Origin: Octopus bimaculoides
Taxonomy: Eukaryota
Length of the DNA stretch: 64,000 nucleotides
Direction: 5' to 3'
Assembly: GCF_001194135.2 (NCBI RefSeq)
Contig: NC_068990.1
Coordinates: 911,772 to 975,771 of the forward strand
A program made the translations under genes and the position numbers. The notes under the pieces were generated by a model. It was not told where the DNA came from. It did not search any database and saw nothing but the letters and a program-made list of their open reading frames with translations. Below are positions 3,249 to 12,200 of the stretch, in pieces; positions within the stretch are counted from its first letter, which is position 1, and the number at the start of each line of letters is the position of its first letter.

Positions 3249-6200
3249 CTACAACAACAGCAAACACATATCAACATATACATTTATAAATTAATTGTTA
3301 AGCATTTAACAGTGAGTATTGATAAGGAAAATGCATGTTAAGTTAAACTTCATAGATTTTAAGAAAGGCTTTTGACTGTGAACTTGGAAACTCTCTGGAT
3401 ATTCTTGACATGCTTGAGGACACCTCCAAAAGATCCTCCAGAAGATTTTGAGGTAGACAGGAAGACCCTACAGAAGATGTTGAGACGTACAGGGAGACCC
3501 TCCAAAAGATCTCAAAGTGCACAGGGACACCTTCCAGATGATCTGGAGGAGTACAGAGAGACTTTCTAGATGTTGAGCTTTACAAGGAGACACTGCATAA
3601 GACTTCAAGGTGCACAGAGAAACACAGTGATACAGACATCCTGGGCATCTCAACACTGCACAGGGAGTCTCTCATAAAGATCTTGAAGTGCCCGGGAAGA
3701 TCTTTCAGGAGAAATTGAGAGAATCTCTGACAAGATTGTCACCTTGATAAATCAGTTCTATAAACAATGACAAACTGATACTCTTTGATTAGTTTTCAAT
3801 GGAATCTGACATGTGACAAATCTGTATCCTTTCTCCCATCTTCTTCCTATTTACCATTGACTGAATCATGTGTAAGATCACATCAGATAAACATAGTGGC
3901 ATCCGGTGGATACTTTTACCTCATTTAGAAAAGCTTGACATTGTGGATGACCGGGAAGCCCTCTCCCGCAAAAGCGATGTTCCACTAGAGAAAACTGATA
4001 GGCTGAATAAAGCAGACAAATTTTAACATCAATACTTCAAAACTGCAGGCCATGTACATAAACTCCAACAATAACCTTGTGTCTATCACTGTCAGTAGTG
4101 AGTCACTAGGCTACATTTGTGTGTGTGTGTGTGTGTGTGTGTGTGTGGTGAGGAGGGGGGGGCAGTTATATTTGTGAGAAGCCTTACCAGCAAAGTCAAT
4201 AAGACAGAAGTGGTCATCCACACAAATCTCATGGGACATCTGTAAAGACATCAGTCAATCTGAAAGTCCTGATAATACAGTATCCTGGAATAAGACTGGA
4301 CTCTGTTAACAGCAAAATCAAATCTGTTCTAATGCATGCCTCAGAATGCTGATGTATGATAAAACTGGACATGATTAAGACCTTGTGTGATGAGAATCAT
4401 ATAAGAATCTCATTCAGGTGGTTAAGTGAATAAGCTTTCAAGAAAATAACTAAAAACAAAAATGAAAACAAAAAAATAATAACTGAGTGCTTACCATTCT
4501 TTTGCCTGTACTTTTTCATCTAGTTGGTCATTTCTGGCAAAATGAATTTAAGGAAAGAAATATTTCCCTTTCATAAACAATAAAAGACAGAGAGAACTGT
4601 CAAAGACCATTCTGCTACTACCTTCATATTTAAAACAATTGGAATCAACTAGGGAACCATTATATAGTTGCTTAAACTGCTAGAAGTAGTAGTGAAATGT
4701 CCACCAGTCAAACATTACCAACATAAAGGTAAGTGAACATTGGATTTTAAAAAAATACAGATTGAAATTGTTCGAAAACAATTGCCTGAATACAATTATT
4801 CGAAAAACAGCAATTCGAAATAAATATCATTTGCGTACTTGATTTTTAATTTTATCATTTTTGTCTAAATAAAATAAAAAATTTATAATAAATAACATTT
4901 CGTATAATTGTCCTTTTGAATAATTTTCATTCATACAATTTTCCATTCAAATAAATTTTTTTCAAATAATTGTTTTCAATTTGTAAAACAAATTCTAAAA
5001 CACATTTAGGAATATCAAACTAAGTATCCCTTGCAACCCTCTCTAACCGAACATCCCTAATCTTGAGGACTTGTAAGTGCTGGTGCCATGTAAAAAGCAC
5101 CTGCGTTGGTGCTATGTAACAGTACCCAGTACACTTTGTAAAGTGGTTGGCATTAGGAAAGGTGTCTAGCCGTAGAAACCATGCCAAAACAGACATGGAG
5201 CCTGAACAACCCTTCAACTGGTCAGCTCCTGTCAAACTGTCCAACCCATGCCAGCATGGAAAACGGATGTTAAATGATGATGATGTGTCTAAGGAGGCAA
5301 AGGACATATATCTGAGAATCAAAAGTGAGCAAAATCCACATCTCTGAAGAAGATTTGGCTTTAGTTCCAAGTGATTATCATCTTTTATGAGTGAGTCTCT
5401 ACTGTCTGCATTCACATTTAATCTATCAGAGCCGTGTGAGCCATTGAGCAAACCTCTACATGGTGGCTAGACCTGCTAAAAACAGGCGTCAAATTTTCCT
5501 CAAAATTTACATTTAACCAACTTAGATAAAGAACACTACATTGAATGACCGCAAATGAAAACACTTTTAGTCATAAGTCTGTATGACCAAGGCTGACCCA
5601 CAGCTAAACAACAACAAATGTATGAATTCTGTGTTCATTCGTAGACTGCTCTTTCAAGATATTTATTTTATTTGTTAAGTACAGAATAATACGTAAGAAA
5701 CTTGTGATAAATTCATTAGTTTGTTCAGCTTTACATGCTAACATGGGTCAGATGTATACATAATATTGAGGCATTGCTTTACAGCTGGATGCAATTCCTG
5801 TCACTGAACTTGTCTTTATCTCAAGGCAGATTTTATTCTACATCTTCAAAAGAGCAGAGCTAACAAGCAATCTATTGACAAGGAAATGACAATAAACATC
5901 ACTGCAGTGGTTCAGTAAATTTTCACGAGAGACTCAAATCGTCGACCTTTCATAAAGCACTGCATTGATCAGAAGAGACCATAGTCAGATGGAGCAATGT
6001 CTGGACTATAGGCTGGATGTGGCAGAACTTCCACACTGTTCAATTCTTCAAGCTTGTTGCTGGTCTTTCTGGCAATATGTGGCTTTGCATTGTCTTGTTG
6101 AAACAAAGCCTGTTTTCGACGAACAAGTCTTGGGAGCTTTTCAACAGTGATTTACTATTGAACATGACATGAACTGAATGAACACACACCACAAAAATAT

Positions 6201-9200: not shown

Positions 9201-12200
9201 CATATCTGGCCAAAGATCTGTTTGTGTCCAAAGGATAAGGTAAAATATTACCTTGCAAGTAAACAAGTGAGAGTTAGTGACAGGAAGAGCACTTAGCCAT
9301 AGAGAATTTGCCTCAATGAATTTCATCTGATTCATGGAAAAATATAATGTTAAAATGATGATGATGATGATGACAATATTGTTTGTAGGTGTGTATGTGT
9401 GTGTGTGTGTGTGTGTGTGTGTGTGTGTGTGTTTGTAGGTGTGTGTAGGCTTAAAAATATGTTGTTTTCATTATTTTTGTTTTATAACAAATGCATATTG
9501 ATAAAGGATACAAATCAGCAATTTGGTACATAACTTGAGGACTGCTGCGTAGAATGGCATGTAATTTGTAGTAACAGTCCAAAGCTTCTTCAAGGCGACC
9601 GAGCATTTTATTACTCAAACCTGATGGGAGAGAAATTAAATATGAAATAAGTGAGATTTTATAACGAAATAAGGTTTTTTTTTTTTGTAAGCTCTAGGAG
9701 AGGCAGAACCAAGAGAATATAACAAAATAAAACAGAAGTTCATATAATCGCATATATATATGATTTAACCCTTTAGCATTTAAACAGGCTACATCCAGCT
9801 AAAATATTCCAACTGTTTTATGTTCAAACTACCCTACATTGTCATTCAAATTATAAACAATCACATCACTGAAATCTCAAAGCTATGAGTTAATGCATAA
9901 TAAATTCAAAACAATGTGAACAAGAGTATTTGGAGAATGCAAACCTCTGCCAAAGTAACATCTGAAATAAACTCGACTGCTCTTACAAATGAGAATACTA
10001 AAAATGAACCCAACTGCTCTCAAAAAACAGGAAAAATAATCCAGAATCCTTGTCCAAGACCAGATTGATCCCAAGATCTAATCAGTTTGTGCCAGTCACG
10101 AAGCCAAACATCCTTGAAAGTTTCATCGAATCCATCCAGTGGTTCTTGAGATATCTTTCCACAGACAAACAAACAAACACAACTGAAAACAATACCTCCG
10201 CCTTTGCAAAGGCAGAGGTAATAAAAAAATTTTCCATTTGACAGAATGATTTGAATGCTTAAAGGGTTAAATGGATTTCATGACTCTTGTAGAGTGATGG
10301 GGATGTAGGTATTCAACCAGCATTTAGTAGTTTGATTAACTGATTTGGCTGCTCACTGAATTAGTACATAGTCGGATGTGTACACCAAACACAGTTCTGA
10401 GACAGAGTCAATTTTACACATGTGACAATGCCGAACATTTGCATTACAATGGAAGTCTGTTTAATGTTCATCTGCAGTTTACATCCACCCAATTTCACTC
10501 AAAAAGCTAGGGCTGAGATGAAGCTATGGTAAAAGACAGGCGAGCTGGCAGAATCGTTAGCACGCCGGGCGAAATGCTTAGCGGTATTTCGTCTGCCGTT
10601 ACGTTCTGAGTTCAAATTCCGCCGAGGTCGACTTTGCCTTTCATCCTTTCGGGGTCGATTAAATAAGTACCAGTTACGCACTGGGGTCGATGTAATCGAC
10701 TTAGTTCCTTTGTCTGTCCTTTCTATGTTTAGCCCCTTGTCGGCAATAAAGAAATATATGGTAAAAGACACTTTCCACAATGCCCTCTTTCACATACATA
10801 CATATATATAATACGTATATATATATANNNNNNNNNNNNNNNNNNNNNNNNNNNNNNNNNNNNNNNNNNNNNNNNNNNNNNNNNNNNNNNNNNNNNNNNN
10901 NNNNNNNNNNNNNNNNNNNNNNNNNNNNNNNNNNNNNNNATATATATAAATATATATATATATACATTATTTACATTTGACAGATATTTATCCTCATCTT
11001 GTTTGTTGTTAACACGTTTTGGCTGATATAGCCTCCAGCTTTCATCAGGTGCTTTGGGGAAATTTTGAACCTGGGTTCTCATTCTTAAGGTATTTTTCGA
11101 TGTTATTATTATTATTATTATTATTATTATTATTATTATTCAGGTCACTGCCTGGAATCGAACTCAGAATCTTGGGGTTAGTAGCCCGCGCTCTTAACCA
11201 CTACATCATATGCCCGTGGGCATATAGAACTGTAATATATATATATATCATTCATACATACATACATATATGTACATATACATGTACAAAGCTATAGAAG
11301 AAGACACTTGCATGGGACTGAAATCAGTACCATGTGGTTGGGAAGCATACACACACACATATTTGTCTAAGAATCCCTAAGCCAGAAGAAACATGCACTC
11401 GTGTGTTAGTCAATAGAGCAGGTATATCAACCAAAGTAATCAATGCCAGCATGGAAAACAGATGTTAAATGTTCATGCTGATTGATGATATAGGATTATA
11501 GACTGATTTCAGCTCATCTTACCAATCAAGGATTTCCTTCTCTCTATTGTCACCCACATCTTCATTCCATCTTTTTTCCACACCACCAACAAACCGGATA
11601 TAACCGGATATAAGGTGGCAAGCTGTCAGAATCGTGACCACACCAGAAAAAATGCTTCCAAGTTTATGTTCTGCATTCAAATGCTGCCAAGGTTGACTTT
11701 GCCTTTCGTGCTTTTGGGGGTCAATAAAATAAGTACCAGCTGAACACTGGGGTCTATGTAACTGACTTATCCCTTTCCCTGAAAATGCTAACATTATGCC
11801 AAAATTTGAAATAAATAACAGAGAGCAGTAACCATATTTTTCCCATCCTTGCCATCTCTGAAGAGCATGTGTCTTTAGATAACTGCCCTGTTGTCTAATA
11901 TTATGTTATCTAATACCCAGTGCTATACCACTTGGTAAGGTCAGCTGAAATGGATCTAAAATACTGTAAACTCCAATTAATACATATATATATATACTTT
12001 TTTACTTGTTTCAGTCATTTGACTGTGGCCATGCTGGAGCACCGCCTTTAGTTGAGCAAATCGGCCCTAGGACTTATTCTTTGTAAGCCTAGTACTTATT
12101 CTATCAGTCTCTTTTGCCGAACCGCAAAGTTACGGGGACGTAAACACACCAGCATCGGTTATCAAGCGATGTTGGGGGGACAAACACAGACACACAAACG

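Follow-up and report, generated by a model that had tools for sequence, protein, structure and literature searches.

Does the IFT88 gene of an octopus retain an intron of the minor (U12-type) spliceosome, and if so, is such an intron an ancestral feature of the gene or a peculiarity of cephalopods? The question was raised by a 64,000-nucleotide (nt) stretch of Octopus bimaculoides DNA (contig NC_068990.1, forward-strand positions 911,772 to 975,771; hereafter the window, whose own positions are used throughout), in which a 5-kb IFT88 intron was read, in an earlier note made from the letters alone, as an ancestral U12 intron that had been inflated by repeats and would make ciliogenesis dependent on the minor spliceosome in this lineage. 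Our analysis favors, with a probability of roughly 0.93, a U12-type intron of the GT-AG subtype that is orthologous to one in the bilaterian ancestor and is retained in vertebrates. The finding is real and was correctly read, and it is already known in kind, as a conserved member of its class in a known minor-intron gene.

Gene model and splice signals of the IFT88 intron

Seventeen exons on the minus strand, joined from 58350 to 3137, gave a stop-free frame of 589 residues, with exon 1 lying beyond the window edge. A human IFT88 sequence served as the probe for locating the exons and for locating only, and all conclusions were drawn from database proteins. The encoded protein is IFT88, as had been claimed: it is identical at 589 of 589 residues to O. 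bimaculoides XP_014767686.1 and at 586 of 589, with zero gaps, to the IFT88 of O. sinensis, and its identity to other molluscan and vertebrate IFT88 proteins is 60-68% over the full query length. The complete match to XP_014767686.1 indicates that the junctions of the RefSeq model are exactly those read here. The IFT88 gene of O. sinensis spans ~126 kb. A bacterial-style list of open reading frames (ORFs) in the window was of no use for so intron-rich a gene, and a 49-residue peptide query against the protein database returned zero matches.

Numbered by homology with the Argonauta gene, which has 23 introns, the intron in question is coding intron 16. The features that define it and its surroundings are as follows, in the order of transcription.

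9512..9620, minus strand: coding exon 16 (exon 'O'), 109 nt, ending in ...GCTGATTT (gene model, protein identity)
4534..9511, minus strand: U12-type intron, GT-AG subtype, 4,978 nt, phase 2 (gene model and homology)
9503..9511, minus strand: U12-type 5′ splice site GTATCCTTT, matching the consensus /RTATCCTTT at 9 of 9 positions
4547..4555, minus strand: putative U12 branch-point sequence TTCCTTAAA, matching the consensus TTCCTTAAC / TTCCTTRAY at 8 of 9 positions, the mismatch being the last base
4534..4535, minus strand: 3′ splice-site AG (gene model)
4495..4533, minus strand: coding exon 17, a mini-exon of exactly 39 nt (gene model; same exon in Argonauta, Mytilus and Patella)
4489..4494, minus strand: U2-type donor GTAAGC, directly 3′ of the mini-exon (gene model)
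3137..3248, minus strand: next IFT88 exon ('Q'), coding for FMQLIGVVATDPDILCRLGQFYDNEEDKTSAFQYYFD (gene model)

Exon 16 codes for ...LSNKMLGRLEEALDCYYKLHAILRSSPQVMYQIAD followed by TT, the opening bases of a leucine codon, while the mini-exon supplies the A that completes this codon, then codes for NDQLDEKVQAKE, and closes with the TG of the next tryptophan codon. The intron thus splits TT|A in phase 2 directly after QIAD, exactly where it had been placed. At the donor (context ...CAAATTGCTGATTT|GTATCCTTTATC, with its G at 9511), the match to the U12 consensus is perfect, and the remaining 16 donors in the window are all GTAAGT-like, so that the contrast between one exact U12 donor and 16 U2-like ones drawn in the earlier note is upheld. 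The branch-like motif that it reported at about 14 nt before the AG was also recovered: TTCCTTAA occupies 4555..4548, inside TTTCCTTAAAT, and the full motif TTCCTTAAA occurs identically in Argonauta. From the presumed branch adenosine, which is the second A (4548), it is 14 nt downstream to the terminal G at 4534, a distance within the U12 range of about 10-20 nt. The intron ends in TTTCCTTAAATTCATTTTGCCAG (longer context ...TTTCTTTCCTTAAATTCATTTTGCCAG), with the AG ending at 4534.

Elsewhere in the gene, the exon starting from 16403 follows an uncommon AAG acceptor (tttcacaag|GCT; 16404-16406, minus strand), the homologous Argonauta site being CAG.

Conservation of the intron across bilaterians

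The IFT88 loci of seven further species were compared, each protein having been mapped exactly onto its own DNA. An intron with U12-type signals was found at the same codon and in phase 2 in six of these seven species, as listed below.

Argonauta: donor AT|GTATCCTTTG, 3′ end TTTCCTTAAATCAACTTTGCCAG, 989 nt
Mytilus: donor AT|GTATCTTTTT, 3′ end TTTTCCTTAACTGAGTTAAAG, 252 nt
Patella: donor AT|GTATCCTTTT, 3′ end TATCTTAACATTATCAAG, 624 nt
Tubulanus: donor AT|GTATCCTTTA, 3′ end TGTAATTAACAGTAATATAG, 414 nt
Xenopus: donor TT|GTATCCTTTT, 3′ end TTTGCCTTAATTGATTCTAACAG, 675 nt
Colossoma: donor CT|GTATCCTTTC, 3′ end GCTCCTTAAGCAGCATGTAG, 192 nt

The donor is GTATCCTTT in all but Mytilus (GTATCTTTT), and the branch-like motif lies 11-15 nt from the 3′ end in the seven orthologous introns by a script that includes the branch adenosine itself in the count, by which Octopus has 15. 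In each gene, the homologous intron is the only one that combines both U12 signals. Alignment of the donor region from the seven species showed that sites +1 to +9 are invariant save for one C-to-T change in Mytilus, and that the adjacent exonic wobble sites and the sequence past +9 vary freely. This conservation of +1 to +9 beyond the wobble sites and flanks points to selection acting on the splice signal within the intron.

Since the homologous intron occurs in both protostomes and deuterostomes, the IFT88 minor intron is older than their split, and thus than the bilaterian radiation, and its near-perfect donor has been kept in at least seven lineages. The proposal of an ancestral U12 intron retained in a cephalopod is therefore borne out by its presence, with the same codon, phase and signals, in six other bilaterians: three further molluscs, the ribbon worm (nemertean) Tubulanus and two vertebrates, a frog and a teleost fish. 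The homologous region of the hemichordate Saccoglossus is one exon, which indicates that the intron was lost there. In S. kowalevskii, this single exon (locus L003, 14421-14678) extends over residues 523-609, and both the U12 and the neighboring intron positions are absent, which fits a clean intron deletion.

The U2 intron directly 3′ of the mini-exon (window 3249-4494, minus strand) has a different distribution, being present in Octopus, Argonauta, Mytilus and Patella and absent from Tubulanus, Xenopus, Colossoma and Saccoglossus. From this pattern of presence in the compared genes, the 39-nt micro-exon looks mollusc-specific, either through a gain in molluscs or through several losses elsewhere. 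In Colossoma macropomum, the intron past the exon ending in ...QYYYE (locus L007, ~9367) apparently has a GC-AG donor (GAG|gcacgt).

Chance, junction placement and removal by the major spliceosome

To quantify the U12-like signals, 172 introns were collected from the eight IFT88 genes, and the 165 left after removal of the U12 intron and its homologues were used to build a U2 donor matrix; this matrix, together with a mismatch analysis, served as a stand-in for intronIC. The earlier note had named a matrix score in the U2 range as one result that would speak against it. The octopus donor scored −0.16 bits, below all 165 U2 donors (8.54 ± 2.38, minimum 2.44; z = −3.66), and the U2 matrix gives ATCCTTT at sites +3 to +9 a probability of 2.25e-5. 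Of the 165 U2 introns, 0 carry, at 8-21 nt from the 3′ end, a branch motif that departs from TCCTTAAC by at most one base. Across the window, GTATCCTTT occurs three times versus 0.67 expected, and only the copy at 9511 stands at an exon end required by the reading frame. Chance is no explanation for the U12-like signals.

Several other candidates were rejected. The GTATCCTTT copy at 34293-34301 (minus strand), which lies in the 20-kb intron 3′ of a long (TA)n run, is associated with no exon, open frame or extra RefSeq exon, and is probably a chance occurrence; copies of ATATCCTT at 8399, 8506 and 8543 have no exon attached and are incidental. Three U2 introns of Mytilus and Xenopus were caught when up to two donor mismatches were allowed, a loose cut-off, and intron 11 of Colossoma (GTATCATTT) was considered as a U12 candidate, yet each lacks any branch motif and was not accepted as U12. 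An Rfam scan of the 64-kb window gave zero hits of any kind, those to minor small nuclear RNA (snRNA) genes included, which is uninformative rather than contrary.

Strings such as those at 34301 and within 8399-8550 do show that U12-like sequence can arise by chance in this window, and they lend something to the view that the junctions are mis-placed, the mRNA using other sites or skipping the 39-nt exon and the U12-like strings being incidental. Against this view, the uninterrupted frame agrees with two independent RefSeq models, IFT88 proteins from molluscs to vertebrates can be aligned gap-free to the 13 mini-exon residues, and Argonauta, Mytilus and Patella have their exon boundaries at the identical points. 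The mini-exon sequence is moreover present in the mRNA of a related cephalopod: a Logan contig of 2,761 nt from a cuttlefish-like decapodiform encodes an uninterrupted IFT88 ORF of 839 residues, is continuous over the homologous junction and carries the mini-exon sequence. Mis-placement of the junctions is thus extremely unlikely. A metagenome contig from ENA (ERZ25084518, 8.7 kb; 501-2984) was also considered as intron evidence; it encodes a eukaryotic IFT88 homologue of 827 residues, 62% identical to the octopus protein, in an uninterrupted ORF that is either mRNA-derived or intronless, and it was set aside as uninformative.

Three points weigh against the U12-type reading. The last base of the branch motif is A where the consensus has C or T, which costs one base pair with U12, and this final A in place of C is common to both octopods. 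The pyrimidine fraction between −23 and −4 is 0.75 versus a U2 mean of 0.68, in a stretch that includes the T-rich branch motif; given so pyrimidine-rich and U2-like a sequence between branch and AG, the intron cannot be said to lack a polypyrimidine tract. Lastly, the RNA support comes indirectly, from another cephalopod, and it is from sequence features that we infer the use of these sites and of the minor spliceosome in O. bimaculoides.

The pyrimidine-rich 3′ end and the single branch mismatch would both suit an intron that is now removed by the major, U2-type spliceosome and whose U12-like donor is a coincidence or a relic of minor-to-major conversion, for which there is precedent. However, the donor would be a very poor target for U1, as its matrix score already indicates, carrying T at −1 and +4 and C at +5 and +6. 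A converted intron should moreover drift away from GTATCCTTT, whereas six of the seven species, protostomes and deuterostomes among them, have the motif without a single change, and the branch motif is held at the narrow U12-specific distance in seven of seven. Removal by the major spliceosome is therefore regarded as very unlikely, and a retained U12-type intron remains the preferred explanation.

Intron length and repeat content

The 39-nt mini-exon indeed lies behind an intron of about 5 kb, as had been noted, and this intron ranks third longest among the 16 complete introns of the gene, of which the median is 1,781 nt. By self-comparison of the window, repeat coverage was 0.34 in the U12 intron, 0.31 in the whole window and 0.00-0.61 in the other introns, and at least 1,423 of the 4,978 nt match elsewhere in the window or are microsatellite. 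The repeat content of 29-34% derived in this way is a lower bound, as it comes from comparison within the window rather than with a genome-wide repeat library. Several microsatellites occur in the intron, which contains no assembly gaps, and the following elements were located.

5077..5285, unstranded: dispersed repeat, found up to 13 more times in the window
6554..6909, unstranded: dispersed repeat, found up to 11 more times in the window
9389..9446, unstranded: (GT)n microsatellite, (CA)n on the gene strand, starting ~65 nt downstream of the donor

Because the intron ranks only third of 16 and its repeat coverage is at the window average, its size follows the general expansion, and the 5-kb length is a passive outcome of the expansion of octopus introns by interspersed repeats and microsatellites. 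The suggestion that the intron was inflated by repeats accordingly holds in so far as at least 29-34% of it is repeat or microsatellite, but not as a distinction of this intron from its surroundings. Only ~50 nt can be aligned between the Octopus and Argonauta introns.

Within the intron, an inverted repeat at 8485-8600 has 50-nt arms that are 94% complementary around a spacer of 16 nt, giving it the look of a hairpin or of an insertion resembling a miniature inverted-repeat transposable element; two of the ATATCCTT copies fall in it, that at 8506 in an arm and that at 8543 in the spacer. By far the largest IFT88 intron in the window is 20,086 nt long (19938-40023, minus strand), with 31% repeats and several assembly gaps. 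Ten runs of N, all in non-coding sequence, were found in the window (870-1033, 10828-10939, 18356-18530, 21235-21551, 53297-53528 and five short ones), and the lengths of the introns that contain such runs are estimates. In the compact gene of Tubulanus polymorphus (locus L006, 3799-4214), the U12 intron of 414 nt is the longest, the median being 86 nt and the others measuring 74-229 nt; this agrees with the published resistance of minor introns to shortening in compacted genomes.

A model for splicing of the intron and its consequences

Judged by its splice signals, this intron would be spliced by the U11/U12 machinery along the established minor-splicing pathway. In such a model, the U11/U12 di-snRNP (small nuclear ribonucleoprotein) would bind the donor and branch site cooperatively, with U11 pairing to ATCCTT in the donor and U12 to TTCCTTA, so that the branch adenosine would be bulged ~14 nt upstream of the AG. 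The U4atac/U6atac.U5 complex would join next, and U6atac would take the place of U11 at the donor. The 39-nt exon, too short to hold much information, would probably be defined by its U12-type 3′ splice site together with U1 bound at GTAAGC.

Removal of the intron may be rate-limiting for IFT88 expression. A further reading goes beyond this and supposes that regulated, rate-limiting removal of the intron, or regulated inclusion of the micro-exon, gives cephalopods a control of ciliogenesis of their own through the minor spliceosome. It draws on the molluscan U2 intron that leaves a 39-nt micro-exon, on the 5-kb intron of the octopod and on the weakened branch sequence TCCTTAAA, and we consider it very improbable. 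As regards the ancestral intron favored here, cilia may plausibly depend on minor splicing, although such a dependence would not be lineage-specific. The claim of a dependence 'in this lineage' was not sustained, as the same would hold wherever the intron has been kept, and human cells and zebrafish have already been used to study it.

The result accords with the established connection of minor splicing to cilia, and it offers U12 classifiers a clean positive control when they are applied to cephalopod genomes. It carries little weight beyond annotation, being neither a new mechanism nor a lineage-specific trait.

Comparison with known minor introns

Human IFT88 is catalogued as a minor-intron-containing gene, alongside IFT74 and IFT80; when the U11/U12 protein ZCRB1 is reduced, IFT88 mRNA and protein fall, an intron is retained and fewer primary cilia form, and defects of the minor spliceosome lead to ciliary phenotypes in human cells and zebrafish (PMC7507305, PMC13216214). 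For the minor intron of human IFT88, neither a number nor coordinates were found in the literature searched. The vertebrate introns compared here, those of Xenopus and Colossoma, resemble the octopus intron in gene, leucine codon, phase 2 and GTATCCTTT donor, and their branch motif lies 12-14 nt from the AG, within the U12 range as in octopus. They differ in length, the octopus intron being 4,978 nt compared with 675 nt in Xenopus and 192 nt in Colossoma, and the vertebrate downstream exon is no 39-nt mini-exon because the U2 intron that follows it in octopus is absent. As Xenopus and Colossoma each have a single U12-type IFT88 intron, at this same position, the sequence comparison strongly suggests that the human minor intron is the same intron, and the catalogued human intron would be expected in the codon after QIAN, within ...QIANIYELMENP....

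In a survey that applied intronIC to more than 3,000 genomes of eukaryotes (Larue and Roy 2023), minor introns are relatively enriched in molluscs and biased away from phase 0, the lengths of minor and major introns co-vary between species (Spearman rho = 0.903), and minor-to-major conversion is a known evolutionary route (PMC10639083). The octopus intron belongs to the same class of element and fits the mollusc enrichment, the phase bias and the length co-variation. The survey catalogued minor introns of O. sinensis and used it as a conservation-comparison species, whereas the present window comes from O. bimaculoides, and the individual octopus IFT88 intron was not seen named in the text consulted (PMC10639083).

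Other ciliary minor-intron genes include IFT80, IFT74, TMEM107, TMEM231, TCTN1/3, CEP41 and RABL2B, and a single U12-type intron likewise governs the expression of each; they are different genes from IFT88, and their functional data are non-cephalopod. Exons bounded by a U12-type and a U2-type intron offer a further parallel: in such mixed exons, exon definition lets U1 that is bound downstream stimulate the U12-type 3′ splice site on the upstream side. The octopus mini-exon has the same arrangement, its U12-type acceptor lying just 39 nt from a strong U2-type donor, GTAAGC, and by analogy the same stimulation might be expected here.

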